Assembly: GCA_002269645.1 (NCBI GenBank)
Contig: NIVC01001886.1
Coordinates: 1 to 64,000 of the forward strand
Length of the DNA: 64,000 nucleotides
Direction: 5' to 3'
Origin: Macrostomum lignano
Taxonomy: Eukaryota
The number at the start of each line of letters is the position of its first letter. Position 1 is the stretch's first letter. Shown here piece after piece: positions 2,884 through 52,819 of the stretch. The notes under the pieces were generated by a model that saw only the letters and a list, made by a program, of their open reading frames with translations, made no database searches and was not told the DNA's origin. Both the position numbers and the translations under genes were made by a program.

Positions 2884-5800
2884 CTACACAAATGCTTTCG
2901 CTTCGCTTCCGCCTGCGACTCCAGCAGCTGTCGATGCCGCAACGCTCGCACCGGAAGCTGTGGCGGCACTTCCGGCCAGTTCGCCGGCTGTGAGCAGGCT
3001 GACTGAGAACTTCTTGCCGCTGTTGGCGTTGCCGCCTCCGCCGCCGCCGCCGGTAGAAGCTGCTGCTCCAGCTATGCCGGATTCGGCGACGTCTTTGAAG
3101 TCGGACCGGATGATGTAGAGCAGGAAGCCGAGAAACTGGAACACATCGGCCACCACAGCTAGCCAATAGGACCAGCGCAGCTCGTTTCTGTGCAAAGCGT
3201 TCTGCTCGCCATGCTTGATAAAATCGCCCCACACAGCCACGGCTACCAGTAGGCAGAGAACTGCAAGTTTATAATGCAATAATTGCAAGTAATATTTGTA
3301 TGATGCAATAATCGTGCGTCCCATTCGAAGCTCGGAGAAGCTCATCACAGCAGGACACTAACCGAGACCAACTCTGCTTAATTTGCACAAGTGGCTGCGA
3401 GTTTGCTAAGATCTATCGACCCCTTGCCTAATATAGTTAACTCAATCCCTTCCAGCCAATAAGAATGGAGCAAAGGATTGGGGAAGCGGGATAGGCGTGA
3501 GGTGGGTAACAGTCGCAGCCAATCAAAACTCGTCACTGCTAAATCGATACTCACGAAGCATTCGTGATGTACACACTTACAGGAAGCAAGCAGACTGCTG
3601 ACAAATAGCAATCTCAGAGTCTTGCTGTGCATCGAGGCCTCGAATTTCATGCGAACAATGCCGATCGCTAGGGAGGCTACGGACGCCACCAGGCCTAGAA
3701 TGAATGCCGCCCTGGTCTTAATGAAGTCCGCTGCAATAGAGACAAGTTTTACACAGATTAGATCTGCTTAACAACAGCTGGCACCCCCCTGAACCCACAG
3801 CAATGCCATTCTATTTGATTCGAGACCATTTTATTTGATTAAGTGCCATTTTATTTGATTGGATGCCATTTTATTTGATTAGACGCCATTTTATTTGATT
3901 AGACGCCATTTTATTTGATTAGACGCCATATTATTTGATTAGACGTCCATTTTATTTGATTAGACGCCATTTTATTTGATTAGACGCCATTTTATTTGAT
4001 TAGACGCCATTTTATTTGATTAAGTGCCATTTTATTTGATTAGACGCCATATTATTTGATTAGACGCCATATTATTTGATTAGACGTCCATTTTGTTTGA
4101 TTAGACTCCATTTTATTCTATTGGAGGCCATTTTATTTTATTGAAGGCTATTTTATTTGACTAGACGCCATATTTTTTATTAGACGCCATTTTATTTTTT
4201 GGAGGCCATTTTATTTGAATCAACGCCATATTTTTTATTAGACGCCATTTTATTTGATTAGACGCCATTTTATTTTATTGGAGGCCATTTTATTTGTTTA
4301 GACGCCATTTTATTTTATTGGAGGCCATTTTATTTCACTAGACGCCATATTATTTGAATAGACGCCATTTTATTAGACTAGACGCCATATTATTCGAATA
4401 GACGCCATTTTATTAGACTAGACGCCATATTATTTGACTAGACGCCATATTATTTGATTAGATGCCATTTTATTTGATTAGATGCCATTTTATTTGATTA
4501 GATGCCATTTTATTTTATTGGAGGCCATTTTATTTGATAAGGAGGACATCAAGACACCAAAATGTTGGGCGATCAAGATCAAGATTTGTACGCGAGTTAA
4601 TGTGTAGCTTAGTGGGTAATTTTCACGCATACGAGGTATGGATTAACTCTGACAGTTCTCAGTTTCTCGGATAACTATTCTATCTTCAGAAGACGAAAGA
4701 CTGTTACTGAGGATACTAAAAGTACTGAAAATGGTAATGGGAGCAGTAATCCTTCAATTGGAATGGGACAAGCTCATACTTCGTATAAGGCTCGTATAAG
4801 AAGCAAAGTGCTTCCGACTTGTGGTTCCGCTCTCCAATCTTTCTCTTTGCTATGCAAATGCGATTAGTTGTCAATTATTTCTGCTTTCTCTTGCCTTATT
4901 TTTCCCTCGAAGTCTGACCATCACACAGTAAGTACAAAGTCAGAACTAAGCTGACCGATTTATATTTGTCTTGCGGGACTATTGCAGTTACGGATGCTTA
5001 CTAAAGTGCAGACCCGATGGAAGGGCGAATAGCGACTGCCGCAGGCTTGTTCGAAGTTGGCAGTTCCTACTGGAGCCGTTCGCCCCAGTTACTTTTGCCC
5101 GCAGCAGCAGCAGACGCTGCACATAGTCAGCCAGAGCTTTCAGTCCATGCGCACCACTTGCCGCATCGGGCCGCGAAATCTGCCGGCTGAATCGCGTGCG
5201 GTTGGATTGGCGGAGTGCTTTTGTTCCCATGGCTCTTTAGTTAGAATGCTTGAAAGATAGCGATCACCCACGGAGTTAGGGTAAGAGTTAGGGTAAGAGT
5301 CAAGGTAATACAAACTGCTGACAGAGCGGAAGCCTTGTCACCTGTCCGTCAGTGCCTCGGCAGAAAATTTCAGCCTCGATGTCATCCGGCACGCAGAGCA
5401 CGACGTGTCCTCGACGGTCGAGGACAGCAGGGCGAGATCGTCGGCGTAGCCAAGCACGCTGAGCCGCCTCTCCGGTCGACCCACGCGTCGCTGCAACAGG
5501 AAGCCGTCTGCCTACCTCGAAGTTTGTCTACCTTGGCGGTCTGGTGCCTGACGTGTGTGACATTTGTCCCACGCTTGACTGGCTGACAATGTATTTTCTT
5601 GTTGTTTTTGGAAGGTAAGGATTAGGGTAAGGATTAGGGTAAGGATTAGGGTAAGGATTAGGGTAAGGATTAGGGTAAGGATTAGGGTAAGGATTGGGGT
5701 AAGGATTAGGGTAAGGATTAGGGTAAGGATTAGAGTAAGAGTTAGGGTTGGGGAAAAATTCAGCATTTTCATCCACTGCGCAAGTGTCACTTCAGAATAA

Positions 5801-8950: not shown

Positions 8951-9754
8951 ACGACCATCCCTAAAGGCGCGCACAGTGTATACACTGACTTTCGATGAAA
9001 AAAGTCAGGGCTGCTGTGCACCCTGTGTGACTGTGGCACCTGTGTCAGCCGGTTCAGCGCAATGGGCATGACTGCTTGCCTCCCCTCCCTGCTGGATGCG
9101 GGTCGAACGTCGCCTTGATTCCCCAAAGCCTCTAACCCAAAAAACTGCATGCAGTTCAAATACCACCGCTATCAGAGCACACACAAAGCTCGATAACTTT
9201 GATAACGCAAACACATCATTTTTGTACCGTTGAACGAGACTTAACTATTCGCAAGTGACAGTAACGCGTGGACTGCGACCACTTAAAAAAGTTCTAGTGC
9301 TGCTTTTCAGGTTTGAAAGACAATATTATTTTACAATCAGCCTTCAGCCAATCGAGCTGTTTACATAGAGAATTCATTTCATGGCTTCACAGCCATCAGC
9401 CAGGGACTTCTCATCCATTCGCTCTAACGAAAGCGAGCAGGGAAATTATTTTTGCAGTGGCGCATCAGCAATTCAGGTAAGTTATTACCTAGAAGTCCGG
9501 CCCTCTCTCTGAAGCGGCGTTCCTGTCTTTCCAATCAATTCGCGGTGACAGTGGAAACAGCCGGGGCGGGCAGTCTCCGAGGAAAGATAAATTTACTCTG
9601 GGCAAGACAAGTGAGGTGGGAGTGGACAGAAACTGGAGTAGCTAAAAGGAGTGCGGCACAACTGTCTTCTTTTGCTTTTGAGCCATGTAGTTCAGAATCC
9701 AATCACTAATTCATCATTTCTTCTTCTCTTCCGTTCTTTTCTGCTTTCTCCAGT

Positions 9755-11640
9755 CAGCTGGATGGTGAGGGCTGTGTGTGTCAAACACGATTTCAGCTGG
9801 ATTGTGAGAGCTGTGTGTGTCAAACACGAGTTCAGCTGGATTGTGAGGGCTGTTTGTGTCAAACACGAGTTCAGCTGGATTGTGAGGGCTGTGTGTGTCA
9901 AACACTATTTCAGCTGGATTGTGAGGGCTGTTTGTGTCAAACACGATTTCAGCTGGATTGTGAGAGCTGTGTGTGTGTCAAACACGAGTTCAGCTGGATT
10001 GTGAGGGCTGTTTGTGTGTCAAACACGAGTTCAGCTGGATTGTTAGAGCTGTGTGTGTGTCAAACGCGAGTTCAGCTGGATTGTGAGAGCTGTGTGTGTC
10101 AAACACGATTTCAGCTGGATTGTGAGAGCTGTGTGTGTGTCAAACACGAGTTCAGCTGGATTGTGAGAGCTGTGTGTGTGTTAAACACGATTTCAGCTGG
10201 ATTGTGAGGGCTGTTTGTGTCAAACACGAGTTCAGCTGGATTGTGAGGGCTGTGTGTGTCAAACACGAGTTCAGCTGGATTGTGAGGGCTGTTTGTGTCA
10301 AACACGAGTTCAGCTGGATTGTGAGAGCTGTGTGTGTGTCAAACACGAGTTCAGCTGGATTGTGAGAGCTGTGTGTGTGTTAAACACGATTTCAGCTGGA
10401 TTGTGAGGGCTGTTTGTGTCAAACACGAGTTCAGCTGGATTGTGAGAGCTGTGTGTGTGTCAAACACGAGTTCAGCTGGATTGTGAGGGCTGTTTGTGTC
10501 AAACACGAGTTCAGCTGGATTGTGAGAGCTGTGTGTGTGTCAAACACGAGTTCAGCTGGATTGTGAGAGCTGTGTGTGTTAAACACGATTTCAGCTGGAT
10601 TGTGAGGGCTGTTTGTGTCAAACACGAGTTCAGCTGGATTGTGAGGGCTGTTTGTGTCAAACACGAGTTCAGCTGGATTGTGAGGGCTGTTTGTGTCAAA
10701 CACGAGTTCAGCTGGATTGTGAGGGCTGTTGTGTGTCAAACACGAGTTCAGCTGGATTGTGAGAGCTGTGTGTGTGTCAAACACGAGTTCAGCTGGATTG
10801 TGAGGGCTGTTTGTGTCAAACACGAGTTCAGCTGGATTGTGAGGGCTGTTTGTGTCAAACACGAGTTCAGCTGGATTGTGAGGGCTGTGTGTGTGTCAAA
10901 CACGAGTTCAGCTGGATTGTGAGAGCTGTTTGTGTGTCAAACACGAGTTCAGCTGGATTGTGAGGGCTGTTTGTGTCAAACATGAGTTCAGCTGGATTGT
11001 GAGGGCTGTTTGTGTCAAACATGAGTTCAGCTGGATTGTGAGGGCTGTTTGTGTCAAACACGAGTTCAGCTGGATTGTGAGGGCTGTTTGTGTCAAACAC
11101 GAGTTCAGCTGGATTGTGAGGGCTGTTTGTGTCAAACACGAGTTCAGCTGGATTGTGAGGGCTGTGTGTGTGTCAAACACGAGTTCAGCTGGATTGTGAG
11201 GGCTGTGTTGTGTCAAACACGAGTTCAGCTGGATTGTGAGAGCTGTTTGTGTCAAACACGAGTGTGTGTGTGTTTGTGTCAAACACGAGTTCAGCTGGAT
11301 TGTGAGAGCTGTGTGTGTGTGTTCAGCTGGATTGTGAGGGCTGTGTGTGTCAAACACGAGTTCAGCTGGATTGTGAGAGCTCTGTGTGTGTGTCAAACAC
11401 GAGTTCAGCTGGATTGTGAGAGCTGTGTGTGTGTGTGTGTGTGTCAAACACGAGTTCAGCTGGATTGTGAGAGCTGTGTGTGTGTGTCAAACACGAGTTC
11501 AGCTGGATTGTGAGAGCTGTGTGTGTGTGTGTGTGTGTGTGTGTGTCAAACACGAGTTCAGCTGGATTGTGAGAGCTGTGTGTGTGTGTGTGTGTCAAAC
11601 ACGAGTTCAGCTGGACTGTGAGAGCTGTTTGTGTCAAACC
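9755..11640. repeat. 39-41+ bp minisatellite (caaacacgagttcagctggattgtgagggctg plus a variable GT tract)
   Basis: Constant core of about 32 nt followed by (GT)n of variable length; explains all ORFs from 9651 to 11730. Confidence 0.95.
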
Positions 11641-14301: not shown

Positions 14302-14854
14302 TCAAGCCGGCTGCGATTCAGCGCCAGCGCCTCGCGCGCCTCCGGCTCGCTTCCGTTCGCGCCTGCGCGCTTTCCTCTGCCTGCGCCGGAGTTTGCGCCT
14401 CTCCCGGCGCTGACGCTTGCACTCGGGCGTGCTGCACTTGGAACGTCGGCCGGCCTTTCTGCCGCCCTTCCGGCGGCCTTTCCGGCCTTTGCGGCCTTTA
14501 CGGCCTTTCCGACCTTTACGGCCCTTCCGGCCCTTCTTCTTCCTTCGGCCGCGGCGCTTCCGGGCGCCACTGGGGCTGGCGTCAGATCCGGCGCTGGCGC
14601 TAAAAATAAAAATAAATGAATGACAATTCAAGGTGATCGAAAATCAATAGAATGGCGCCTATTATTTTTACGGTCCAGCATTACAGATGGACTTACACTT
14701 CAGGCCGCTGATTTCCGGTCTGAAGTGCGCCGCCTGCTTCAGGAGCCAGAAGCTGCAGCGGCTGTCGGCCAGAGGCTGGAGCCGCCTCACAGACGAGGCT
14801 GTAAGCGGCAACGCTGGCCGCAACGACCAGGGCCAGTGTACAAAGGCCCTTCAT
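14302..14854 (-). CDS. Two-exon secreted, highly cationic Gly-Arg-Lys repeat protein, 151 aa (exons 14854-14697 and 14599-14302)
   Basis: ATG at 14854 gives MKGLCTLALVVAASVAAYSLVCEAAPASG (signal-peptide-like). A 97-nt GTAAGT...TTTTAG intron (14696-14600) joins in phase 2 to ASAGSDASPSGARKRRGRRKKK(GRK)6GRRK...CSTPECKRQRRERRK; stop TGA ends at 14302. Confidence 0.8.
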
Positions 14855-16613
14855 GTGCGCGCGTCTTTGACTTTTTAAAAAAGTAAATGTGTATTATAAT
14901 CTTTTGCTACGAATAGCTGTCCGGTTCGACTCTTGAACGGTAGCAATTTAGTTTTCTGAATGCTGTTGTGGGCTTTGACTTCTGTTGTGGCCTTAAATAT
15001 GAAACTTCATAGAGCGAAGGGACGGGGAGGGAGGGTTGACGGAGACGAAAGGAAAGGGAAGGGAAGGGAAGGCCTTGGGTTTGGCGGCAGCGAGACTGAG
15101 GACCCATGCAAAGGGGAGAGTGTGGAATCGGGGGGCTCAAGAGAAGATGGAGGCTTAGGAGCCAATGTGCAAACGAAAGAAGGATGAATCGAAGGAATTT
15201 AGCCCATGCAGGGTTGGGTAATGTGATGACTAGGCGCCGCGTCCAGCCAGCCCCTCCTCCCCAAGTCCACACAAGACCCAAACCCTCGCTTTGAAGGCAA
15301 GAGGTTTTGCAGTTTCTGCGTTTGCTGTACTCTGAGTAACTGAACATTTAGTTAGTAACCTTGTACGCCTCGTCACGTGCGACCGATGCGGACCGCTGGG
15401 CCCGCGTCGACTTCGTCGCTCTTGATGTCGCCCGATCTATACGCACAACCTTCCTCTGCTCTCTCCCTCCTTCCATCTACATGTTATTGGGCGAGCGTGT
15501 GTTCTTGCATGAAGCTGGGCACATTAGCACTTTTCACCCATCTGGCTGCAGTTAACTTATAGAGTTCCCTACAGAAAGCGAACTCGATACCTCCTATAAG
15601 TCGTGATCGTGAGACCTACATGTAACTACTGTATAGCGTGTTGCTGGTCTGGTTGTTGCTAATGAGACCTATGCTCGTTCTACTATGCGGTCTACATGTA
15701 CGAGCGATACGTCTACTACATATATTAGCCAATGCACCTTCCTTTGGTGTACGGCAGATGAACTAGACATACCGATAGAAGAAAAACGATCGAGCCTTTC
15801 AATCCGCCATTGAACACAGCATGATATGCGACGCATCGATAGAGTTCGTCAAGAGACATTGATTTATCAATACAGATGCTCATGGCTCAAGTGCGATGAT
15901 ATCAAACTATTATGCTGTGTCGCTGAGACAGTACATGTACATGTACGAGCGTATCTTGATCTTGTTATGTACCCAGAAAGAATTGAGGGGGACAATTCTT
16001 ATATTTAATTATATATTAAACTTCTAAAAAATTGGCAAATTTATATCATGCATTTTAAATAAAAAGTCTATAAAAACGTGACAAAGGGGTGTGGTAAATA
16101 ATTTTGGCACCAGCTGATGGACCATCCCCCCGTCCCGCCCGGATCCGGGAATGTAGAAATTTAGTATTACTAACACGTTGGTCGTTGCGCGTTATAGCTA
16201 CATTATTACTACGTCGTTACTTTTCCATCTTGCTTTCCAATCGACTTAAGGCGAGCCTAATAGCTGCATTTATATATTTATCAATATAACTTACTTGCGG
16301 GAAAACACAAAATTCCCAATTTCCTATCGAATCGATCAACTTTCAAGCCGACATCCCTTTTAGTATTTAGCTACTGTTCGTTGCCAATCAAATCGATTTT
16401 AGACTCATAAAATAATAAGTACCAATCAACTAACTAAAAATAATCTTTTTTGTTTTTATAAAAGCTTTCTTCTGCTGATGAACTACAAATATTTGCTTTA
16501 ATTTATTTTACTAAGATTTTCTGGTTTAAAATAAGAACCAGCGGTAAATTATTATTCTTTTCAGCGAGGCTGTTGTTGCGCGGTAGTTCACTGTAAATTT
16601 TTCCTACCTGTCC

Positions 16614-19600
16614 ATGTCCGTATTTACATTAGAATATTGTTACACAAATATTTTTGCTATTGTAAGTACCTTTCAATATTTCCTGCATTTTTTGTCATTT
16701 TGTGTTCATTATTATTTGCTCTTTTGCAGCCCTTTTTGCTTTGAAAACTGCTGACATGCCACTATTTGCTTTTGAAAGTAAAGCAAAATAATTTTAATCA
16801 ATTAAATTTCAATTTTTAGTGAAAACCGATACTTATCTTTGCTCTTAATGACAAAATGTCACTAATTAGGCCCTAGCCCTATCCATTTTAGCCTTATAGT
16901 ATTAAGTATAACCATATTTATGACAGTGGTAAAAAGTATGTATTAGAAATGTGGCAGTTGTTATTCTTATGGTGACTGTATAAATAGTCAAACAGGTATT
17001 TTTTACAGTAAATGCATAAGGCACTATCTGGGCCTAATGCTAAGGTTTTAACTTAATATAACCATATAAATAGTAAAACTGTTATTTTAGGGTCATTATA
17101 CTTAAGAAGCAAAATGGCTATTTTTATATAGTCATGGGGAAGAAATTTAATTTATATTAATTAGTTAACAATTAGTGACAAGAACTACTATATATATTAA
17201 TAAAATATTTGTTTAATTCTATAAATTCTCTTATTATTTGCACTGCAAGTTTCTTATTTAATTTAGAACTATCTTTCTATTGATATGGTCATTGCAACAA
17301 TAATAACTGCTTAAAAATTTGACTATAGTATCTAAATGTCAATATAATTTGCTAAATTCAAGTTATTGTTTATTGCAACCAAGGCATAAAAATACTATTA
17401 GTATGATATTTGTATCAGTTATTATAAGACTAATGACAACTTAAAGCAATGCCAATACTAAGTAGCAAATTGGTAGGAACCAATGTCTATATATCAATTT
17501 CATTATTAGCCTTATATATATACTTTGTATATCTTATATTGCTATAATACATAGTTAAATGAACTAATAGTTATAATAAAATATGCCAAGGATTCCAAAA
17601 ACTAGTTAATGATGACAAAATCTTTTGACCCTAGTAAGCTTTGGGGTTGGAATTTTATAATACCTAGTGTTGTATCAATTATTTACAGATATCTAAGGCA
17701 TTATTAATGCTGATGCTTTTAATATTTTGTGTCATGTCATATATAAAGTTAGCCTAATAGATAGATAAAGTAAGGCAAGAGTTATAAAATGTCTCTAACG
17801 TCAAATGATTTTTAGGAAGGGAATAAGGATATTGATTCCCCAGGGAATTATCTTATCTGGAACCCAGGGAATTTACTGTCATTCCCTGGGGACCTCTGGG
17901 AAAAGATAATGGTGGATAACATAGATCATAAGTAGAATTTTATAAACTTTAATTTAAGCTTTGTACTACATGTTCAAGGCGCAAGGGTAAAAACTTTGGG
18001 TTTGGAATTAAATGATGGCATCAAATTGTTTCTTCCATATTCCAAAAATTATAATGAGCACTTTTCTGCAAAGCAGTTTGAGATCATGCTTTTTAGTCCT
18101 TTGGCTATAACTTCCTTATTTCAAATGTTTAAAAATTGAAAACTTCCACACTTGTGTATCTTTGAATTGTGCATCAATTGGTGCACAGTATGTATGCTTA
18201 ACTATTAGCAGTCATGCTTGGGCGCAACCTTGGGATTCACTCGGCCATTTCTATTGGCAACATACACATGTAAGTCGCTATTGGACAGAATAGTAGTCAC
18301 GTGACTGCTCTTAGCCAATAGTGACTTACATGTGTGTGTTGCCAATAGAAATGGCCGGGTGATTCCCAAAGTTGCGCATGTATGTTAGCAATATAGAAAA
18401 AATGCAAAAAACTGTAAAAGTACATTTCCATTTTTTTGCCACTAACTTTTTGTTACAATTAAAAAAACAACCTAATAATGTTATGCATCATAGTAAGACA
18501 CACCTACAACCCTCAAACATTTTAGCTTGAGTTTTAATATGCATGAGGAAATGCACTTTTGTAAAGACATAATCTTAAGACAAGCATTTCAACTGAAGCC
18601 TGTTCCTTTTTCTGCAATGAATCCATACAAAACTATACTCATTAAATAGATCAGATTCTTCTCTTTAAAATGACACCTCACTTTTGAAATTTGCTCTTGT
18701 AGTTTTGAAGTTACAGCAGTTTTTGTGAGATTTTTTGTCAATTTTTCGATGCACATGTCTCATATTATTTTATGCTTCACGAATTGGCTGGCTGTTTGTT
18801 CCTCATGCTCAGCACTTTGTGGGTTTCACAGAGCTCACTGAAGAACAAGTAGTATAATAACATGAAAAATGATTTTATAATTAACAAAAAAATTAAATCT
18901 TTACAATAATAAAAAATCTTTTAAATAAAAGCCAATTCAAATTATAGAATATTAATATTATAATTCAAATTGTAAATTAGCTTTTTTAAAAAAATATTGG
19001 GTAAAACAAAAGTTTTTATGGTGTTTAAAGTTTTTTTATAAAATGAAATACTTGAAATATATATTGTAACATTGTAGCTAAAACTTGAATTTAGGTTGTT
19101 CTATCTCAGTCAATGGCCTTTTGATATCTTTGCACATATGGCTTCTAGAAATTCTATAGTCTTATCTTCATAAACTGCAAAAACTTTCTGTTTTACCCAA
19201 TATTGTAATAAATGGTTCTATACGACTCAAGGCATAAATAAATGAATTTAATTGGTTCTAAAAGCAACTTAAAATTAAAAATGTCAAGAAAATAAAAAAA
19301 TAAAGAAACAATTAAAAAAGAAAAAAATAATGCAGTACATAGAATATATATATGCCTTTTTTCTATAACTCTATATTAACTTACAAACTAAAGTATACTA
19401 GAAGACCTAATTTCAAATCCCAATCCAAATCCTAACCTAAGAAAATCATTCCCAATCTTAACCTTGCTTGATGACTTTAATTCTATCCAATTTCTAATTA
19501 AGAGCAAGCTTAATTTGATCAATTGACCTAATAGATAAACTATTTAAAGTCTAAAGAGCAATTCATTTGCTAAATAAACAAATTGTACATTTGTTATTAT

Positions 19601-22600
19601 ATTTTCTAAAGACAAAATTATTTTATATAGTAGAAGTGCAAATGTAAGTACCAATCTAATTTAGGGTTTTAATAATGTAGCTCTTGTCTATTATATATAA
19701 AGTAGGTGATTTTGTACTTTCAAGGGTATCTTCTATCTATTAGTCTTTATTTTGTGAAAATATCCTATGATCGTGATAGCTGTAGCTAATTATAAGTATT
19801 TTACTACAAGCAAGCAATTTAATAATCAGTGTGGAAACCTAGTATTAAAAGATAGATTTCTCAATACTCTATGGTTTAAAACATGGACTTGGAGCAACCA
19901 AGTTAGTAATTCAAGCACTCATTTAGTTTTGGGCGACATTTCTAGTCCAGATTGGGCAACATTTCCAGTCACTGTCACAAAAAAACATTGTTTAGCAATT
20001 TGACAATCATTATTCACATTTTTAATAGAACAATCCATTACTACAAACAATGCAATATCTGTAAGTTAAAGAACATAAACAGAGCAAAATTGAACAAACT
20101 AAACTGACAACTGATTAGGTAGGTCAAACAAAATTAGCATAATCAGGTCTTATATAGGAAAGTAAGTCAGTCATTCAAATTAGCTTGTTAGGCATTCTGT
20201 CAATTGGTAGCACCATTAGATAGAATACATAGCCTGCGGCTTCACTTTCAGCCATTGTGAAATATGGGCAGTGTTATCATCCCTCTCAATTGCACTTGAT
20301 CAAATTGTACTTTGTGTTACTTATCTTGTTGTAGAGGCCATGTGCTGTGTGATATTTTTCTAGTGTTTTATCTGTAGTAACAAAGCCTAGCCCATCTCCC
20401 CATCTTCCTTTTAAAGGTCATTGGGTTCCTTTTCTTCTAGCATGCTGAATGTGTATATCTTTTTGCAGCCAAAATGGTGCTAAAGACACTGAAAATGACT
20501 TAACGAGTGCTTCAATTATTAAATTAATTGCTCTAATGACCTCTGGTTTAGACCATAGACTTAAAAAGTCTATCTTTAAGCATTGCTTTCTTTACTGGTT
20601 ATTAAATTGATTATTAACAGTATCAAAATGGCTTTCAAATAGCTGTATTAATGCCTGGTAAAGTTTTTATTTAAAAACCAAGATTGTAATATGTTTATTT
20701 CATACAAAACTTGTCTAGCTTCTCTAATAATTACATATTTGTGCAATAGATGTGTATATTAGTATTGGTAGGTTACATGTTTTACAAATAGCTTAATTTG
20801 AATTTCTTGGCCTATTTATAGAAACATTTACCAACTTAATATCCTTTATATGCTTTATATGCTTTTGCTACCACATGGAGTTAGTCATAGTTTATAGTTG
20901 GCATTGGACACTACATACATGCACAGTTTGGTATAAGAGGCAGAAGTCACATGACAAGATCCAGGCTAATTTTTGTGCACAAGCTCCAAATTAATGTGCA
21001 ATTAGAGAGCATTCTATAAACGCACCCCTCCAAATCAACCGCTATATAGGCCTCCCTAAAGGAGATTCATTATCGCCGGTACCGAATAGCACAGCCAGTA
21101 GAGAGTGCGCACACCTGCTCCGATCCGGTGTTTAGCAGCTTCGCAAAATGCCAACGCTGCGGCATTTTGTCAGCCTGGAAGCGCTACCTACCTGACACTG
21201 GCGATCCCAGCAAGCCGTACGATTATGGCAATTATGAGAAGGAATTATGGGTATTCTGGCATGGCGGCCACGACCCGCCTCAGCTGCGGGACAGTCTGGC
21301 GCACGATCTCACACCGTGGTCAGACAGCTCGGATGGCGGCGGCATCAGCTACGAGGTTCGGACTATGCTATTCAAAGCAGTGCATAATTGCATCGAGCGC
21401 TGTTTAACTGGCAAAGGCTACGTTCGACTAGGCCAATGGTTTGTCCGGCCGCTGGTGCCCGGCCTCTGTTTGGATCCGGCTGTGACGCAACAGTTCAGCC
21501 TGGCTTTGAACTATTTCCTGCACGGCGAATCCGTCTGCGCCGCTGTTGATGCTAAACTATATCCCCCTGTAAGCTAATTTAATACTCCTTTGCAGCAGTC
21601 TCGTTCTCGTTCTTTGCAGCAGCTTTTTACTAACCAACAATACCCCATTGAGATTTGTTAAATAGCAATTACCATTGAGATTCATCTGATCATTAATCTT
21701 CTCTTGTGAAATTAGATTACAATCTTACCAGTTGAGTTTTGATGCTTCAAAATAATCCTCACCGCTCGGTTTATAATATCCCCTTGTGAGATTTGTTAGC
21801 TCTGCTCACAATATCCCCTTGTGAGATTTGTTAGCTCTGATCACAATATCCCCTTGTGAGATTTGTTAGCTCTGATCACAATATCCCCTTGTGAGATTTG
21901 TTAGCTCTGATCACAATATCCCCTTGTGAGATTTGTTAGCTCAGCTCACAATATCCCCTTGGGAGATTTGTTAGCCCATCTCACAATATCCCTTTGTGAG
22001 ATTTGTTAGCTCTGCTCACAATATTCCCTTGTGAGATTCTATTTAATGCCTGTGTGCCCAATTGAATCAATCGCTTGTCTTAATTCAACCACAATACCCA
22101 ACCATGAAAATGCAGGTACACAGCCTGACCAAGCAGCAGTGCCAGGCTCGCACTCCCGTCATTCTGTCTCCACACGGCATTGCTGGCGAACTCACTGGCC
22201 GAGAATGGGATTCACAAAATCAGATTGAATCCCTAGTCTGGCGCGAGTTCTTTCCTCACGTTCGCACCGATCGCGGCTTTGTTGAGGTGGCCGTCGGGCA
22301 GCATCGCCTCTGGTACCCGGTGGATCTTCTGTTCGCCACCCAGGCGCCGCTGCCGCCGGAGCCGCTATCCCAGATTGAGCTCAATCTGGCTGCCGAATCA
22401 TCAGCAGATGCCTGTCTGCAACACCTGCTCGGCTGTCAGGGCTCGGATGCTAACGGCGTGCATCAGCAGCAGCAGCAGCAGCGCTGCACGTGTCGCAGGC
22501 GCACAAAGCCGCGCCCGGCACTGACCAGCGCCTATCACAATCGTTTCTTTCAAGCCACCGAGCGGACTGTAGACCGAGAACCGGCTATGCCGACGCTTAG

Positions 22601-25600
22601 CCCGCAGGAGCCACTCAGCGTTGAAGAAAGCGAAGCCGCAGCCGCCGCCGCCTCTGGGGCAGCCTCCATCCCAACGGCTGATGGCGTCGGGCAACAGCCG
22701 TCGTTAAAAGGCCTGCCAAAAAGTGAGCCAATCTCGCCGCCGGCCGCCGCGTCAGTTGAAGCAGCAAAGTCTCAGGGCGACGGCGTCGGACTGATGGACG
22801 ACGAGTCGCAACAGCAGCAGACCCAGGCGGCCGCCGCTTCTGCGCTTGCCGAATCTTCGTCGAGTCGGCCAGCTTCGGTCAAGACGCCGCAGTCTCAGCC
22901 AACTGGCAGCGAGTCTCAGCCCGCTTCGGCCGCCGCCGCTGCAGCCGCCCCGACGCCGCCCCTGCCGCCTCCGCCTCCCCCACCGCCGACATCCTCTGCC
23001 CAACAACAGCAGCAACAGCAGCCGCCACCGCTTCCCGCCTCCTCGATGCCTAACGGTCAAGCTAGCAGTGTTGCAGCCGACTCACTGTTGGAGCCTGGCC
23101 TCGGCTGGCTTTCCGTAGTGCAACAATCGCTGCGCAAGCGGCCGCTACCGCAGCTGGAGCCTTGGGAAGCCGATCTGAACGATTCTGGGCACGACGTTGT
23201 TAGCGAACTGCCCGAATGGACATCGCTGGCTGCATACGCTAAGCACGCTCGGCTCCTGCTACCAGCTCGCGGCATTTTGAACGGTCCCGCTAGCAGTGCT
23301 AATGCGACTGCCGCTGGCTCCGTAGGCGGTAGCGGCGCTGCCAGCGGCGTCGCTTTACCTATTGACGATTCGGCTTCGCCTTCGGGCATTGGTTCCCTAG
23401 TCGGCCTGAGAAGTTCGCCTAGTAAAGCCGGTTTGTCAGCCGACTCTAAGTCAAGTAAGCTTTTCATCATTGTATAATTTTTCTATTATTTGATTTATTC
23501 TCTTTATACCCTTATCCGACCTCTAGTTCGATTTGCTATTTTCAATATATCGAAGCAATCATCCCAAAAATTTCAGCCGCCGTGTCTCTGAAGAGCGAAG
23601 ACATACTTAAAGTAGAGAATCTGCAGATGCAAAGCATTTTTGAAGTTGAATCGCCAGAGCCCGTGAGTTGGTGGCTGTTTTTCTTAATTATTACCTTCTG
23701 TAGCCCAATCATTTTTGTTGCTCTTTAAATCTTTTAAAAGACTTAACAACCAAGAAGCAACAACCCTATGGAAAATCGCCTCCACACCACTACACCCAAT
23801 GGAAAATCGCCTCCATGCCACTACACCCAATGGAAAATCGCCTCCACACCACTACACCCAATGGAAAATCGCCTCCATGCCACAACACCCAATGGAAAAT
23901 CGCCTCCATGCCACTACACCCAATGGAAAATCGCCTCCACACCACTACACCCAATGGAAAATCGCCTCCACACCACTACACCCAATGGAAAATCGCCTCC
24001 ATGCCACTACACCCAATGGAAAATCGCCTCCACACCACTACACCCAATGGAAAATCGCCTCCACACCACTACACCCAATGGAAAATCGCCTCCACACCAC
24101 TACACCCAATGGAAAATCGCCTCCACACCACTACACCCTATGGAAAATTGCCTCCATGCCACTACACCCTATGGAAAATCGCCTCCACACCACTACACCC
24201 ACCCTATGGAAAATTGCCTCCATGCCACTACACCCTATGGAAAATCGCCTCCATGGCACAACACCCTATGGAAAATCGCCTCCACACTCGCACCCGCAAC
24301 GCTTTGCAGTTGGACAACGCAAACGCCGCTTGCGAAGGGCCCGGCTTACACGGCAATCCGTCCAGCAGCGGATGCGTCATCGGTGGCACCTCCATGGCCT
24401 CCTGCGGCGGCTCCGGCACGCTGCCCGCCTCAGACCTGTGTCGGATCTACCCGACCCCGCCCTCTCTAGAGAATCACATTCACCCGTCACCTGCGCCGGA
24501 AACCGACCAGGCCAATATGCTCAGTCCTGCCGCTGCGGCCGCTGGACACCACCACCACCATCATCACGCCTCGGCCGACTGCGGATCTGGCCCCGATCTA
24601 GCTAACGACGACGATTGGAGCTTCTTGACCTCGCAGCGTCATCAGGGCGGCAGTCTGGGCCAATTATTTACTGCCCAGAATCCTCCGATGCCTCATCTAT
24701 CGATTGTGTACGTACCGGAGCTGCCACAGACGCATCGGCCGCATCGGGCTGCTGCGGCAGCTGCTGGCCACGCAGGCGGTGGGCACTACGGCATTGGCCA
24801 GCAGATTGCTGCAACACCTTCGTCGGCCTCTGTCACCGCTGTCGGACACATGCCGGCCGGAACGCCGGTCACGCCCGGCTCATTCGCCGCGGTGGCAACG
24901 CCGGCCAGTGTCCGGACGCCCGGACAGGCGGGCACGCCGTGCGGTTCGATTGTTGGCGAACAGCTGGACCAGTCTCAGCTGTCCACAGGGCATCAGTCTA
25001 TTCAGGCGTCTCAGGCGCAACCGGTTGAAGCGCTGAGATTAAATTTGTTGCTATCTGACTCACTGCTTTGTCTGTGCCGAGATCAGGTACTTTCTTAGAT
25101 TTTTGGGTTGTTATCATGCTTGGTTCAAATCTAAACTGGCTCTACTCTACGGCAATTGCATTCCAGTATCCTCGATTAGCCACCACCCTTCCAAACCCTC
25201 AGCTGTTGAGCCACACTCCCATATCCTCAGTTGCTGGGCCAGCCTGTCAGATCCTCAGTTGCTGGGCCAGCCTCCCAGATGCTCAGTTGCTCGGCCAGCC
25301 TCCGATATATTCAGTTGCTGGGCCAGCCTCCCAGATGCTCAGTTGCTGGGCCGGCCTCCCAGATCCTCAGTTGCTGGGCGACCCTCCCAGATGCTCAGTT
25401 GCAGGGCCAGTCTCCCAGATCCTAAGTTGCTGGGCCAGCCTCCCAGATCCTCAGTTGCTGGCCAGTCTTCCAGATGCTCAGTTGCTGGGCCAGTCTCCCA
25501 GATACTCAGTTGCTGGGCCAGTCTCCCAGATCCTCAGACTGAGCCATCACCCTAGAAAATATCCAGAAAAGACCTTGTCTAATCTCTCAGCGCCTTATAC

Positions 25601-28600
25601 CTTCAATTAGCCGACTCGCCACTGCAAGCCAATATTCACATCACTTACATAGCAATTCTTCCCGCGCAATCCCCAGAACTTCGAGGCCTGCAACATCTGC
25701 GTGTGCCACGGCGACCTGACAGGCTCCGAGGCGGGCCTTTACATGCCCGGCCTGTTGGACCGGCGGCCTTCGCCTTGCCAGTGCGGCTTCTCAGCCAGCG
25801 CCAACCGGGCCCTTGGCCTCGGCTCCAACATCTTCTATGAGGATCTGTGCGACCTACTGGGCGATAGACGACGCCTGGATTATCGGCCCTGGCCGTCAAC
25901 TTATTCGCCGGCTGTGATTGACAGTCTGCTGAACTTTGTCTCTCTCACCATTCCGCTCAGGCAGTTCCGATCTCCTCCAGCTCAGCAGCAACAATCGCAG
26001 TCAGACGCAACCAACTCCGCCGTTGCAGTTGTCGCTGGCGCCGCTGCAGCCGCGGGCGCCGCAACTGCTGATCCCGCTGCTAGCAGCAGCCTGCATCCCG
26101 GTCATCTCGCTCAGTTTGAAGATTGCAACGAAGCGGCTAAATTAGTGCTACAGGTAGCCAGCTTGATCCTGATAGCCAGAATCACACTATGTGTACAGTG
26201 AGGGGGGGGTAATTTTCTCATCATCAGGAAACATTCAGCGCCTGTCCTGGGGGGGGGTTGTGGGATTCGCAACTTCAAGGTCAGGGGTTCGATTCTCGAC
26301 CCACTGGGAACAATTTGTGTCCTTGAGCAAGACAGCTGCAAAATGGGTGCCAGCATTAGCTGGGGTAATTGAGGGTGTACATGGCGACCCCCCAGTCCTT
26401 GGACTGAACAGCCGTACGCAGCCTTCAGATGCGCCGCGCAATAGCTGCGGCTGAGCTGTCGGTTGCACACCTGCCCATTAGGGCAAGTGTAATCAATTAT
26501 TATTATTATAAGCTATATAATAGATTGCCTACTGACAAGTAGCAAATAAAGATTGTGAAGTGAATTTCTTATAGTGTGTGCAAAAAGACTTCAACCATGT
26601 CTACATTTGGGGTGCTAGCTCAGCGTTTAATAACCAGCTGGTCTCATCGTGGGATTACAAGCTCACAGGGTTGCCTCTCATGAGTACTACAATGAATCGA
26701 GCATTCATCTTGAGTACTTAACCTGTATTAAGAGTACCTTGTTCAGGCCCATCGCGGAACAATTTTGTTGCTAGGCCGACTGGAGGGGAAGGATGGGAAA
26801 GAGTCCCAGATCCATCAGTCCTCCCTTCGAATTTCAGTTAAACAAGCATAAACGAGACAATCTAATAAGCCAGGGAATCTTTAATAACCCACCTTTAAAC
26901 AATCTAATCCGCAGGCGTGTACGCAGGGACTGCATCAGCCGCAGCAGCAGCAGCAGCCATTTTCACTGGCTGAACAGCCAACCCTGCTGCACCGATGGAG
27001 CTTAACTGGCCAGCTGCCCACGGCTGGCTCGGATTTGGTCCGATTATTAAAAAGCCTCAGACCCTGGTTCCAAGACTCGCTATGGGGCAAAGCGTTGCAA
27101 GGCAATTATTGGGTAACTGGCCCAATGACCTGGCAAGAGTTTCATCAGTTTGCTAGGCGAGGCTCCGAGGAGAGCTGCGAGCCGCAGCCTTTGCCATTAA
27201 TATCTGTCTATACTGACCGAGACGAGGGCATGCTGATTGCGCCGACCGCTGTGCGCGACTGGGAGCGTCTCGGCTTGGAGCCCTATAGCCGGCCAAAGAA
27301 ACTGCAGTTTGTAGTGCTGGCGCCAGTCCAGGCTAGCCGGGTATTGAAGAAAGCGGTCCGGCGTACAATGAGCGAACTGACTGTAGCATTCGCCGATTGC
27401 AAACTAGGCGAGCACAGTCCCGTTGCTTTATCGACTGATGGCGATTTCTTTTTAGATACCGGCCGATTAGAGTCCACAGAATTGCCGCCTAATTGCGTGG
27501 TTTATATGCTGGTTCGTGGCCAAACTGAGGCTTGCCAACTGCGCGACACAGTGGCCAAACTGACTGGCGGAGCTGTCCCCGTGCCGCTGTCCACGAGACT
27601 GTTGCTGGCTCCGGCCAAGGGCGATTTGCGTGCTCTGGCTCTGCGTGTTTACACTCAAGTGAGCCTGCTAGGTCATCTAGCATCTGTTGGCATTATCTAG
27701 CCTCCACGGAGATTATCTGATCTCTACTGACATGATCTAGTCTCTATTGGCATGATCTAGTCCCTACTGACATGATCTAAGCCTTACTGTCATGATCTAG
27801 TCCCTACTGTCGTGATCTAGTCTCTAATGGCATGATCTAGTCCCTACTGTCATGATCTAGTCCCTACTGTCATGATCTAGTCTCTAATGGCATGATCTAG
27901 TCCCTACTGTCATGATCTAGTCCCTACTGTCATGATCTACATGTAGTCTCTAATGGCATGATCTAGTCTCTAATGGCATGATCTAGTCCCTACTGACATG
28001 ATCTAGTCTTTACTGACATGATCTAGTCCCTACTGGCATGATCTAGTCTCTACTGACATGATCTAGTCCCTACTGTCATGATCTAGTCCCTACTGTCATG
28101 ATCTAGTCTCTACTGACATGATCTAGTCCCTACTGGCATGATCTAGTCCCTACTGACATGATCTAGTCCCTACTGTCATGATCTAGTCCCTACTGTCATG
28201 ATCTAGTCTCTAATGGCATGATCTAGTCCCTACTGATACTGACATGATCTAGTATCTAATGGCATGTTCTAGTCTCTATTGACATGATCTAGTCCCTACT
28301 GTCATGATCTAGTCCCTACTGACATGATCTAGTCTCTAATGGCATGATCTAGTCCCTACTGGCATGATCTAGTCCCTACTGACATGATCTAGTCCCTACT
28401 GTCATGATCTAGTCCCTACTGACATGATCTAGTATCTAATGGCATGATCTAGTCTCTATTGACATGATATAGTCCCTACTGTCATGATCTAGTCCCTACT
28501 GACATGATCTAGTCTCTAATGGCATGATCTAGTCCCTACTGACATGATCTAAGCTTTAATGTCATGATCTAGTCTCTAATGACATGATCTACTTCCTACA

Positions 28601-30239
28601 GATACTGACATGATCTAGTCTCTAATGGCATGATCTAGTCCCTACTGATACTGACATGATCTAGTATCTAATGGCATGATCTAGTCTCTATTGACATGAT
28701 TTAGTCTCTATTGACATGATCTAGTCCCTACTGTCATGATCTAGTCCCTACTGACACTGACATGATCTAGTATCTAATGTCATGATCTAGTCTCTAATGG
28801 CATGATCTACTTCCTACTGATACTGACATGATCTTGTATCTAATGACATGATCTAGTCTATATTGATATGATCTAGTCCCTACTGTCATGATCTATTCTC
28901 TATTGGTATGATCTAGTCCCTACTGACATGATATATTCTCTATTGGCATGATCTAGTCCCTACTGACATCATCTAGTCCCAGTCCCTACTGAGATACGCT
29001 ATTTAATCCTATCCCAACAAAACTACCCCTCCCCAGGTGCCGAAGCGAGTGCCTTATCCCACGGACGGTCGCTCGCTGTGCGGCTTCGGGCCGCTGAAAG
29101 ATCGCGAGAGCTGCCAGCGCGAGCTGGGCATGACCGGCCCCGTGTCTCTGTTCGCTCCGCCCTACGTGCTGCATGCAAGCTCCGATGAACCGGTGCTATT
29201 GTGCGCCTACTGCCTATCTGAGGACAGGCGCTGGCTACTTGCCACCCTAACAGACGAGCGGGGCGAATTAAATTATCGCCGATTAATTAATCTACGCGTG
29301 CCCGACTGTCATCGGCGTAGGAAAGCATCAACTAGACAGCTGGGACCCGAACGCCTGCTAGAGTGGATCTGCGACCTGCCAGAGACCAGAGCTCAACGCT
29401 GGCGGCTTGTGCTCAGCCGGCTGGGCCGTCTAGGCCACGGCGAACTGCTAGTGTGGGCCGACCTGCTCAAACGGGCCAGCCTGCAGCAGCGCGGCGCCCG
29501 CTCGGCCGCTCTGTGCGCAGTCGACGCCGATCCCCATCTGCGCGTCCTGCCCGACCAGCTCAGCCGGGAAGGTCCGCAACGCGGTCCGCCCAGCGTCGGC
29601 GCCGACCGGCGTGTCAGCAGCGCAATCACGCACATCCTTGTGCTGCCAACTTCGGCCAGTTTTAGTCAGGCTAATCCGGCCGACTTTCTGGGCGGCAGTC
29701 TGGGCGAGCCGGACCTCATGAACGAATTATTAGGCGATCCCGGCGTTCTAGGCGGCGATACTGGCAACGATTTGTTCAACGATTTGGATTTGAATTTCGA
29801 TATCCAACTGCCAGATATTGAGGAGCCGGTTGTTGGGCCGCAGGGCGGCGACGGGTCCGGCCAGTTGATGCAGCAGCCGCTGGCTCTTGGCTACTACCTG
29901 TCCAGCGCTCCGCCTGGCCCTGTGCCAGCCTGGTTCCGGGTGGCTCCACCTGAGCAGGCCGCAGTCTGCCTGCGCGCCAGCCTGCACCTCAACCAGCTGG
30001 CTTCTTGCGATCGAGCGCCGCTGTCGGCCGCTTGCGATCGCTCGCCAACGCATCCGTTGAACACCTACAAGACTACTGAGGTGCTGCGCTACGTGCTGGA
30101 GACCTGCCACAGTCTCAGCTGGCTTAGCGTTGATCCGGCCACTGGCGATCGGGTCTCCTGTCTGCCTAGGCACATCAACCAGCTATTCCTGCTGTACCAT
30201 TCTGTGCACGCCGTTAGCGCTAGCTGCCAGACGTCCTGA
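16614..30239 (+). CDS. MED13: Mediator subunit 13, 8 exons: 16614-16661, 21050-21568, 22116-23454, 23577-23662, 24310-25086, 25677-26153, 26915-27658, 29037-30239 (about 1730 aa)
   Basis: All introns are GT-AG and phase-compatible (5193 nt total). Motifs: LEYCYTNIFAI, SSFAKC..ELWVFW, VILSPHGIAGELTG, YPTPPSLE, NFEACNICVC..CQCGFSA, GPMTWQEFH, GLEPYSRPK, LCGFGP, WLLATLTDERGE, QQPLALGYYLS, LRYVLETCHSLSWLSVDPATGDRVSCLP. Confidence 0.95.
18222..18377. repeat. About 156-bp near-perfect palindrome (MITE-like hairpin) in MED13 intron 1
   Basis: Arms gcgcaaccttgggattcactcggccatttctattggcaac... and ...gttgccaatagaaatggccgggtgattcccaaagttgcgc, centred on gtcac|gtgac at 18300/18301. Confidence 0.85.
21770..22040. 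repeat. 35-bp minisatellite in MED13 intron 2
   Basis: cacaatatccccttgtgagatttgttagctctgat, about 8 units. Confidence 0.92.
23762..24290. repeat. 31-bp minisatellite in MED13 intron 4
   Basis: ccaatggaaaatcgcctccacaccactacac, about 17 units, ending about 20 nt before the acceptor at 24309. Confidence 0.93.
25195..25540. repeat. 28-bp minisatellite in MED13 intron 5
   Basis: cctcccagatcctcagttgctgggccag, about 12 units. Confidence 0.9.
26249..26510 (+). mobile_element. tRNA-derived SINE, copy B (MED13 intron 6)
   Basis: B box ggttcgattc; shares ctgcaaaatgggtgccagcattagctggggtaattg and aacagccgtacgcagccttcagatgcgccgcgcaatagc with copy A; tail gtgtaatcaattattattatt. Confidence 0.85.
27715..28990. 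repeat. 20-bp minisatellite in MED13 intron 7
   Basis: tactgacatgatctagtccc and variants, about 60 units. Confidence 0.95.
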
Positions 30240-36600: not shown

Positions 36601-37951
36601 AGTCACCAGCCAGTTCAGTCACACTGCCCAGTCACCACCCAGATCAGTCACTGCCCAGTCACCAGCCAGTTCAGTCACACTGCCCAGTCACCACCCAGAT
36701 CAGTCACTGCCCAGTCACCAGCCAGTTCAGTCACTGCCCAGTCACCAGCCAGTTCAGTCACACTGCCCAGTCACCAGCCAGTTCAGTCACACTGCCCAGT
36801 CACCAGCCAGTTCAGTCACACTGCCCAGTCACCAGCCAGTTCAGTCACACTACCCAGTCACCACCCAGATCAGTCACTGCCCAGTCACCACCCAGATCAG
36901 TCACTGCCCAGTCACCAGCCAGTTCAGTCACTGCCCAGTCACCAGCCAGTTCAGTCACACTGCCCAGTCACCAGCCAGTTCAGTCACACTGCCCAGTCAC
37001 TAGCCAGTTCAGTCACACTGCCCAGTCACCACCCAGATCAGTCACTGCCCAGTCACCAGCCAGTTCAGTCACTGCCCAGTCACCAGCCAGTTCAGTCACA
37101 CTGCCCAGTCACCAGCCAGTTCAGTCACACTGCCCAGTCACCAGCCAGTTCAGTCACACTGCCCAGTCACCAGCCAGTTCAGTCACTGCCCAGTCACCAG
37201 CCAGTTCAGTCACACTGCCCAGTCACCAGCCAGTTCAGTCACTGCCCAGTCACCAGCCAGTTCAGTCACTGCCCAGTCACCAGCCAGTTCAGTCACACTA
37301 CCCAGTCACCAGCCAGTTCAGTCACTGCCCAGTCACCAGCCAGTTCAGTCACTGCCCAGTCACCAGCCAGTTCAGTCACACTGCCCAGTCACCAGCCAGT
37401 TCAGTCACTGCCCAGTCACCACCCAGATCAGTCACTGCCCAGTCACCAGCCAGTTCAGTCACACTGCCCAGTCACCAGCCAGTTCAGTCACACTGCCCAG
37501 TCACCAGCCAGTTCAGTCACACTACCCAGTCACCACCCAGATCAGTCACTGCCCAGTCACCAGCCAGTTCAGTCACACTCTCACTCGCCCCTCAACCCCG
37601 CAGCCCCGCCTCGTGGTGAATCGAAAATCGCCCATCCTGGCTTTGATTTCGATCGCCCTGATCATGTTCGCCTGCGGCGCTGTGGCCTCAATGCTGAAAT
37701 ACTCGCATCTGCTAGACAAAACGCCGATGTCTGAGCTGCACATCTTCAATCCGGGTCTAATACTGAAGCTGCTGGGCCTGCTGCTGCTGTCCGTGTTCTG
37801 CTGCGCAGCCGTGCTGTGCCTGCTGTGCGCGGCTTTCTGCGCCGAGGACTCCCTGCTGAGCTGCGAGCTGACGCGTCGGGAGCTCCGACTAGTTGACCAT
37901 CGGTGTCCTGCCGATCGTAGCGACGACACCGCTGACGTCATGGCCGTATGA
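33647..37951 (+). CDS. Small MARCH-family RING-CH E3 ubiquitin ligase with 2 TM helices; exons 33647-33763, 35374-35469, 37604-37951 (186 aa)
   Basis: Spliced product MEAAKTTCRICLSEASSIDLISPCRCTGTQKYVHNGCIM|AWIHLEGEVEPKKLACEICGSKY gives a complete C4HC3 RING-CH with the conserved W. Both introns are phase 0 GT-AG. Exon 3 has two hydrophobic helices. Exons 1-2 are not called as such in the ORF track. Confidence 0.9.
34110..35300. repeat. 40-bp minisatellite in MARCH-like intron 1
   Basis: ttgagtagattctgtaaatctcaaccaggttacagtcaaa; near-identical core copies with degenerate copies at both edges. Confidence 0.96.
35505..37580. repeat. Composite 27/29-bp satellite filling MARCH-like intron 2
   Basis: Interspersed units cagtcaccagccagttcagtcac(ac)tgcc and cagtcaccacccagatcagtcactgcc. 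Confidence 0.96.
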
Positions 37952-52530: not shown

Positions 52531-52561
<31 letters not shown>

Positions 52562-52782
52562 CTTCGCTGCAGACGCTACACCAACAGCAGCAGCAACAGT
52601 TGCCGATGCCTCCGCCAGGCTGGGCTACAGCGGCGGCACAAGCTCTGCGCTTGCAGATGCCGCCGCCGCCGCAGCCGCAATTGTCGCACGCAATGGGTTC
52701 GGCGGGGCCTGTGCCTGGATCGTATGGCATTGTGCAGCCGCTCTATCCGATGCTGCAGCTGTTTAGGCCCATGCAGCAGCTT

Positions 52783-52814
<32 letters not shown>

Positions 52815-52819
52815 GCAGC

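Follow-up and report, generated by a model that had tools for sequence, protein, structure and literature searches.

Temporary adhesion in flatworms is among the few reversible bioadhesive systems for which a molecular model exists, and this model centres on secreted polycations rich in glycine, arginine and lysine (GRK) and on a predicted anionic release factor. In Macrostomum lignano, the adhesive protein Mlig-ap1 reaches 5,407 amino acids and is flanked by GRK low-complexity regions (PMC8621496; PMC9229212), and its lysine/arginine-rich (KR) regions exceed 3,600 residues in total (PMC6410801). The GRK part occurs on its own, as a secreted protein named ap3, in Minona ileanae and Theama mediterranea (PMC6745481; PMC9229212), and secreted proteins rich in GRK are well established as constituents of the adhesive granules of flatworms. 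The Minona proteins Mile-ap3a/b are described as having "multiple units of the peptide GRK", and RNA interference against them yields adhesive vesicles without an electron-dense core (PMC6745481); Tmed-ap3 consists of 3,700 amino acids with a signal peptide and a GRKHS low-complexity region (PMC9229212). In the adhesion model, heparin masks the cationic regions and blocks attachment (PMC6410801). Here we analyse the first 64,000 nucleotides (nt) of the M. lignano contig NIVC01001886.1 (assembly GCA_002269645.1), hereafter the window, and focus on the minus-strand locus at 14302-14854, which is tentatively interpreted, at somewhat less than an even chance, as a real, unannotated two-exon orphan gene that codes for a small secretory polycation precursor, favoured as a miniature GRK module.

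The predicted protein, referred to as the GRK polycation, belongs to the same animal group as Mlig-ap1, Mile-ap3a/b and Tmed-ap3, and to the same species as Mlig-ap1, whose GRK-containing regions had been pointed to in an original prediction made from the sequence of the locus and are indeed described in the literature, as flanks of the protein (PMC8621496; PMC9229212). Like the ap1 and ap3 proteins, it has a run of G, R and K behind a signal peptide, which is putative here, and its positive charge is extreme; interaction of the secreted product with a polyanion such as heparin is known for the adhesion proteins and inferred for the GRK polycation. The low-complexity GRK composition of the adhesive proteins recurs in residues 70-105, whereas the size does not compare, as the GRK block has 36 residues and the whole protein 151, against thousands in ap1 and ap3. 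Moreover, the GRK polycation adds a neutral spacer ending in RKRR, a CSTPEC motif and an Arg-rich helix. Because of the low complexity, homology to ap1 or ap3 is undecidable, and neither protein was matched in the two protein searches performed (a word-indexed search of 5.8 billion clusters and an exhaustive HMMER search of 1.84 billion representatives), in which their presence has not been established and a low-complexity correction would suppress such matches. The GRK polycation is thus not filed as an ap1 or ap3 family member, although by analogy it probably works like their GRK module. Secreted GRK polycations of flatworms are known; what would be new is a small free-standing variant with RKRR, CSTPEC and an Arg-rich helix.

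The anatomy of the locus reproduces the two-exon structure with a 97-nt canonical intron that had been proposed for it. Exon 1 (14854..14697, minus strand; 158 nt, 64% GC) starts at an ATG at 14854, the first start codon after an upstream in-frame TAA at 14896, and encodes the signal-peptide-like segment together with the beginning of the neutral spacer. The intron (14696..14600, minus strand) is exactly 97 nt long, in phase 2 and 32% GC, and reads GTAAGT...TTTATTTTTATTTTTAG, with a T-rich tract ending in AG at 14601-14600. The coding part of exon 2 (14599..14302, minus strand; 298 nt, 71% GC) ends with a TGA stop at 14304-14302. The phase-2 junction 14697/14599 restores a single open frame across both exons, and the spliced coding sequence of 456 nt translates into 151 amino acids, half of which are Lys and Arg. 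Without splicing, exon 1 runs into a stop within the donor (GTG TAA) and leaves an open reading frame (ORF) of only 53 amino acids, which explains why the signal-peptide exon was missing from the ORF list, as the original prediction had remarked: the ORF falls below the default 60-amino-acid cut-off. No ATG lies within exon 2, whose unspliced ORF opens inside the intron at a TTG. An alternative in-frame acceptor (14594-14600, minus strand; ...TTTTTAG CGCCAG|CGCC) lies 6 nt downstream of the main AG and, with the exon starting at 14593, would produce a protein of 149 amino acids, two residues fewer. As for the flanks, a TATA-like box (TATAATA; 14892..14898, minus strand), read from the sequence as a putative core promoter, is located 44 nt upstream of the ATG and is followed by a short 5' leader (14855..14890, minus strand) with a T-run and then an AG at 14872-14871. 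This AG could, speculatively, act as a spliced-leader trans-splice acceptor for the gene; 38.8% of M. lignano genes are trans-spliced (PMC5730564). Downstream, two putative AATAAA polyadenylation signals on the minus strand (13990-13985 and 13952-13947) imply a 3' untranslated region of about 310-350 nt in AT-rich sequence.

The support for the reality of the gene is intrinsic to the sequence, and several independent features of it exceed what chance would be expected to offer. Two GC-rich blocks (66-71%) coincide with the exons, between flanks of about 30-40% GC, and the composition changes where the exon boundaries have been placed; for comparison, the mean GC of verified coding sequence in the rest of the window is about 62%. 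Synonymous codon choice agrees with that of the neighbouring genes, with GGC accounting for 82% of the Gly codons against 79% in the neighbours and with similar usage for Arg, Lys and Ala. The whole window was also scanned on both strands for two-exon models with an ATG, a GTRAGT donor and a polypyrimidine-AG acceptor that encode at least 140 amino acids. Seven such models were obtained, and a signal-peptide-like start occurs only at the GRK-polycation locus, which is counted twice owing to the second in-frame acceptor 6 nt downstream. The same scan applied to 30 block-shuffled windows returned no model with a signal-peptide-like start.

The GRK run provides a further line of evidence. As originally listed, its codons vary synonymously, the six units reading GGC CGG AAG / GGC CGT AAA / GGT CGG AAA / GGC CGT AAA / GGC CGC AAA / GGC CGG AAA; they hold five differences from the consensus, all five synonymous. 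Random substitutions in (GGCCGGAAA)x6 keep (GRK)6 intact with p=0.0015 for five substitutions and p=0.006 for four. In the antisense RPF/RPL frame, the variable sites are also third codon positions, yet only two of the five differences are synonymous and the other three alter the amino acid. The original prediction took this pattern as a sign of protein-level selection rather than of a DNA microsatellite; a protein-level constraint is indeed suggested, whereas the opposition of the two proved a false dichotomy, since the DNA of the run forms, in addition, a degenerate 9-bp tandem repeat of 7 copies with 85% matches, according to Tandem Repeats Finder (TRF). The window as a whole has 86 TRF rows and the genome abounds in minisatellites, and a 9-bp tandem repeat in such a repeat-rich environment indicates that slippage probably built the GRK run; that all its differences are synonymous suggests a later constraint on the encoded protein.

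The locus is an orphan in the collections searched. No composition-independent homologue of the GRK polycation was found among the 5.8 billion clusters or the 1.84 billion representatives, where the matches obtained rest on the basic repeat; Pfam returned 0 families at E<=10 for the 151-amino-acid protein, and the PDB sequences contain no relative, the best match (E=0.34) being compositional. This outcome fits the original suggestion that the protein may represent an undescribed family. The search for paralogues that had been proposed, run within the window by tblastn and also by blastn, came back empty. A six-frame scan of the window for K/R density revealed no other long polybasic ORF, the further matches being translations of simple repeats. 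Moreover, the window contains no non-coding RNA match in Rfam, no long terminal repeat or terminal inverted repeat structure surrounds the locus, and the neighbouring ORFs have no Pfam match. Exact look-ups of the exon-2 ORF, the exon-1 ORF and an upstream ORF of 146 amino acids gave no record. The string GRKGRKGRK occurs in no paper of the literature searched, and neither the sequence motifs nor the tryptic peptides to be expected turned up in the supplements of a seminal-fluid screen or of the adhesion paper. As the protein is missing from a collection that includes the annotated proteins of the contig, transcriptome-based annotation apparently did not call the gene, which appears to be unannotated.

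A number of these and other observations weigh against a functional secreted polycation, and several of them would also suit a non-functional locus, at which an ORF had arisen by chance or very recently (de novo) from a GC-rich 9-bp minisatellite and is either untranscribed or without a stable product. Neither an orthologue nor a paralogue emerged from the two protein searches and the window-wide tblastn and blastn; the spliced protein is missing from the 5.8-billion-cluster collection, in which the annotated proteins of NIVC01001886.1 are present; the GRK run is a tandem repeat by TRF in a window with many others; and the codon-usage log-odds fails to separate the proposed frame from two antisense frames, so that only the agreement in synonymous codon choice is used here as codon-usage support. 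The expected non-basic tryptic peptides were not found among the listed rows of the footprint and tail proteomics tables (PMC6410801), which were searched against a transcriptome that possibly lacks the gene. Furthermore, the hydrophobic core of the N-terminus is rather long at 18-19 residues, which would allow an uncleaved signal anchor, and the basic region contains 16 R-X-X-R sites, at which convertases might fragment it. Conversely, a non-functional ORF would have to account for the coincidence of many independent signals: an ATG opening a signal-like start, a GTAAGT at the end of the ORF, a strong acceptor, the restoration of the frame, the GC contrast between exons and intron, a TATA-like box and AATAAA signals. 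No comparable model exists in any of the 30 block-shuffled windows, and the differences within the repeat are synonymous only (p of about 0.002-0.006). Absence from the collection is also weak evidence against expression, since the N-terminal exon of the Mediator subunit 13 (Med13) gene of the same window has no counterpart there either; annotation in the collection is therefore demonstrably incomplete, and M. lignano transcriptome assemblies seem to be absent from it. On balance, the absence of a functional gene is considered unlikely, albeit a serious alternative to the favoured secreted GRK module.

The predicted protein has the layout MKGLCTLALVVAASVAAYSLVCEA / APASGRQPLQLLAPEAGGALQTGNQRPEVASAGSDASPSGA / RKRR / GRRKKK(GRK)6GRRKGGRKAGRR / SKCSTPEC / KRQRRERRKLRRRQRKARRRERKR / AGGARGAGAESQPA, and its individual elements turned out as originally proposed. 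Codons 1-24 (14783..14854, minus strand) encode MKGLCTLALVVAASVAAYSLVCEA, a putative cleavable signal peptide according to heuristics: a basic n-region (K2) precedes the hydrophobic core, whose mean Kyte-Doolittle value is 2.2-2.8, and the C-E-A|A at the putative cleavage site satisfies the -3/-1 rule. The spacer (residues 25-65) comprises 41 amino acids and is neutral, with a net charge of -1. At the boundary between spacer and polycation, the RKRR of codons 66-69 (14551..14562, minus strand) matches the furin/proprotein-convertase consensus R-X-K/R-R and is, by that known consensus, a putative cleavage site; the predicted sequence thereby shows the generic arrangement of convertase-processed precursors, with a putative signal peptide and an R-X-K/R-R motif between propiece and product. 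The GRK block follows (codons 70-105; 14443..14550, minus strand), GRRKKK(GRK)6GRRKGGRKAGRR, whose 36 residues are 24 K/R, 10 Gly and 2 others; its six perfect GRK units span residues 76-93 (14479-14532, minus strand), and a seventh GRK lies at residues 99-101. The CSTPEC motif (codons 108-113; 14419..14436, minus strand) holds the only two cysteines of the mature protein, which might close a small loop or link two molecules through a disulfide. Lastly, the Arg-rich segment PECKRQRRERRKLRRRQRKARRRERKRAGGAR (codons 111-142; 14332..14427, minus strand) is predicted by AlphaFold2 as a helix, after which a neutral tail extends to residue 151. The AlphaFold2 model was obtained from the single sequence without an alignment; it assigns a predicted local distance difference test score of 89-97 to the helix 111-142 block, places another helix at 3-21 within the signal-peptide-like segment and has low confidence elsewhere, so that the GRK block is effectively disordered in the model. 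K/R residues make up 48 of the 98 encoded by exon 2, as had been estimated at about that number; the net charge after signal removal is +43, and the product predicted after RKRR has 82 amino acids, 9.6 kDa, a net charge of +40 and 54% K/R, with nearly no hydrophobic residues in the mature part. An example of a peptide that the predicted protein should yield in ribosome profiling or mass spectrometry is QPLQLLAPEAGGALQTGNQRPEVASAGSDASPSGAR.

The high K/R density of 54%, which is protamine-like, together with the confident AlphaFold2 helix 111-142, part of which (RQRRERRKLRRRQRKARRRERKR) resembles the arginine-rich RNA-binding or nucleolar-targeting motifs of HIV Rev and lambda N, would also suit an intracellular nucleic-acid binder, namely a nuclear, nucleolar or sperm nuclear basic protein with a non-cleaved N-terminus or a different first exon. 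Protamines and sperm nuclear basic proteins share with the GRK polycation the very high Arg/Lys fraction, the small size and the condensation of a polyanion (DNA), whereas they have no signal peptide, spacer or convertase site, and they display Arg clusters in place of a mixed K/R/G repeat behind a signal-peptide-like N-terminus; no sequence similarity to them was detected in Pfam, the two protein searches or the PDB. Moreover, the first ATG after the in-frame stop opens straight into a classical n-h-c signal-peptide pattern, exon 2 offers no ATG as an alternative start, its ORF beginning within the intron at TTG, and it is hard to see what a nuclear protein would do with a furin site and a spacer. 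An intracellular nucleic-acid-binding role is, on this evidence, highly unlikely. The position of the multibasic site directly after a non-repetitive peptide suggests still another reading, that of a prohormone-like precursor whose active part would be the 41 N-terminal residues (APASGRQPLQ...SPSGA), set free by cleavage at RKRR, while the polybasic C-terminus would serve only for sorting, granule condensation or convertase inhibition; polyarginine peptides are known inhibitors of furin. However, no amidation glycine stands ahead of the cleavage site, no repeated peptide copies are present, no likeness to a known neuropeptide family was seen in Pfam or the two protein searches, and the part of the gene that looks constrained is the GRK repeat, all of which leaves such a precursor very improbable indeed. 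A neuropeptide reading of the GRK units themselves was likewise set low, as these units leave no peptide between cleavage and amidation signals.

In the favoured mechanism, expression, secretion, cleavage, binding partners and role are all inferred. Residues 1-24 would act as a cleavable signal peptide and direct the protein into the endoplasmic reticulum, and a furin-type convertase would then cut after R66-K67-R68-R69 to separate the 41-residue neutral spacer from the 82-residue product (+40, 54% K/R), composed of the disordered GRK-repeat block, the two-cysteine CSTPEC motif and the C-terminal arginine-rich helix. This product may bind, condense or cross-link polyanions, for example sulphated glycans in secretory granules, mucus or glycocalyx, and, once released, it could attach to anionic surfaces as well; the near absence of hydrophobic residues points to an electrostatic action. 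Planarian rhabdites contain sulphated glycosaminoglycans (PMC5450325), which are possible partners. Candidate tissues may include adhesive, rhabdite or mucous, prostate or other glands. By analogy, and with this generic mechanism included, we favour a role as a small stand-alone equivalent of the GRK low-complexity module, while granting it a likelihood that falls a little short of even. The roles originally listed in adhesion, mucus or rhabdite condensation, glycan binding and antimicrobial defence are mutually indistinguishable on present evidence.

One role that had been considered, in release from the substrate, does not agree with the literature: the release factor is predicted to be small and negatively charged, and the addition of lysine, arginine or a cationic peptide prevents detachment (PMC6410801). 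Since the published model needs an anionic factor, a polycation is a poor and unlikely candidate for it, although it could contribute to cohesion or to the condensation of granules. A more specific proposal, in which a free-standing mini-GRK protein is packaged with the GRK adhesive system or acts on it, is given a slim chance, jointly with its sub-variants. The protein might seed or cap the dense core of the adhesive granules; it and Mlig-ap1 might vie for the anionic release factor or the glycocalyx, a competition that would tune the attachment time; it could be an example of the independent KR-rich gene type that, as Pjeta et al. proposed, may have fused to a mucin-like core to give ap1 (PMC6745481); or it may be a member of a convergent, undescribed class of marine-eukaryote proteins with a signal peptide, a spacer, a multibasic site and (G-K/R-K/R)n, to which the anonymous proteins P0001, P0002 and P0138 considered below would also belong.

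The precursor layout is equally that of host-defence peptides. A signal peptide, a propiece, a basic site and a cationic mature peptide form the standard arrangement of antimicrobial-peptide precursors, and Hydra arminins, cathelicidins and "polycation poisoning" peptides share with the GRK polycation the signal peptide, propiece, processing site and cationic C-terminal product. Excess positive charge has been reported as necessary and sufficient for the condensation-based killing exerted by secreted cationic peptides (bioRxiv 10.1101/2023.03.09.531820), a precedent for charge-driven killing that would suit a product with a net charge of +40 and an Arg-rich helix. The GRK polycation might accordingly be a secreted, protamine-like antimicrobial or anti-predator agent that is not structural and kills by condensing the nucleic acids and ribosomes of its target. 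In contrast to such precursors, however, its propiece is neutral (net -1) rather than anionic, its mature part is not hydrophobic or amphipathic in the way that most membrane-active antimicrobial peptides are, and no homologue among known antimicrobial-peptide families was found in Pfam or the two protein searches; in addition, the precedent for a literal GRK repeat is provided by the flatworm adhesive proteins. Host defence is thus regarded as decidedly unlikely.

Among the database matches, three small anonymous proteins show a strikingly similar layout: P0001 (ERR1712223) and P0002 (ERR1712088), from Tara Oceans eukaryotic metatranscriptomes, and P0138, from an ENA contig. P0001 and P0002 resemble the GRK polycation in the order of their parts, in that behind a signal-peptide-like start lie a spacer 25-40 residues long, a multibasic RRRK and finally (GRK/ARK)n, and P0138 follows the same layout with KKKK and (GKK/GKN)n; their sizes are also similar (116-153 amino acids), whereas their spacers are acidic and their C-terminal domains unrelated. 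The phmmer E-values of these proteins (7e-5 to 2e-4) are due to the repeat alone, and P0001 and P0138 were rejected as homologues by composition-corrected BLASTP, which gave no similarity. The three proteins are best treated as analogues, convergent rather than homologous, and may point to secreted mini-polycations as an undescribed class that recurs among marine eukaryotes. Polybasic cement proteins, such as the Pc proteins of the sandcastle worm, are likewise secreted Gly/Lys-rich polycations that pair with polyanions in secretory granules through complex coacervation; they differ from the GRK polycation in taxon and in their Tyr/DOPA-containing repeats and have no known homology to it.

The contig belongs to the NIVC series, that is the Mlig_3_7 assembly, more than half of which is repetitive, with 15% simple and tandem repeats (PMC5730564), and the window conforms to this picture. 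A 4-kb AT-rich stretch (16000-20000; about 29% GC) with no evident coding potential separates the GRK-polycation locus from the Med13 gene, which extends over several long ORFs on the plus strand (21128-30239; Med13_C E=3e-53, Med13_N weak) and has introns filled with minisatellites, for example at 21775-22038, 23763-24287, 25183-25537 and 27691-28978. Further along the plus strand, a called gene of 846 amino acids (50461-55683) contains long poly-Q/poly-N tracts and C2H2-zinc-finger-like motifs, and minisatellites of 23 bp and 16 bp break it up at 51245-52162 and 54240-54774. A single-exon YTHDF-type gene on the minus strand (59063-60550; 495 amino acids, PF04146) is annotated in GenBank at these coordinates, with BOX15_Mlig013895g1 as cluster partner, and two further contigs carry a near-identical copy (PAA52467.1, PAA59767.1), in line with the duplicated genome of M. 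lignano. At the other end of the window, a minus-strand ORF (2884-3348) matches PMP22/claudin weakly and below the threshold (E=0.0017) and probably represents the final exon of a gene for a tetraspan membrane protein. As for tandem repeats, a perfect 15-bp repeat, GGGAAGAGTACATAC, occupies 39155-39840 in 45.7 copies with 100% identity and generates spurious ORFs of more than 230 amino acids in four frames, and the minisatellite arrays at 35507-37579 (29 bp x 74 copies) and 9754-11634 (39/80 bp x 38 copies) give rise to artefactual ORFs of up to 715 amino acids. Such ORFs are a warning for ORF-based readings of the M. lignano genome.

Short low-complexity orphan ORFs are common, and that of the GRK polycation may prove silent; if unexpressed, it would merely be a well-formed chance or proto-gene ORF of little consequence. 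The transcriptome-based annotation of Mlig_3_7 may nonetheless miss short, low-complexity secretory genes of this kind, and the locus offers adhesion researchers a concrete and cheap hypothesis. If the favoured reading is true, a natural GRK polycation of 9.6 kDa would be far more tractable than adhesive proteins of several thousand residues, and the mini-GRK protein, in synthetic or recombinant form, would be usable for studies of GRK-polyanion binding, granule condensation and detachment. For the adhesive system of M. lignano itself, a mini-GRK gene could bear on the origin of the GRK flanks of ap1.

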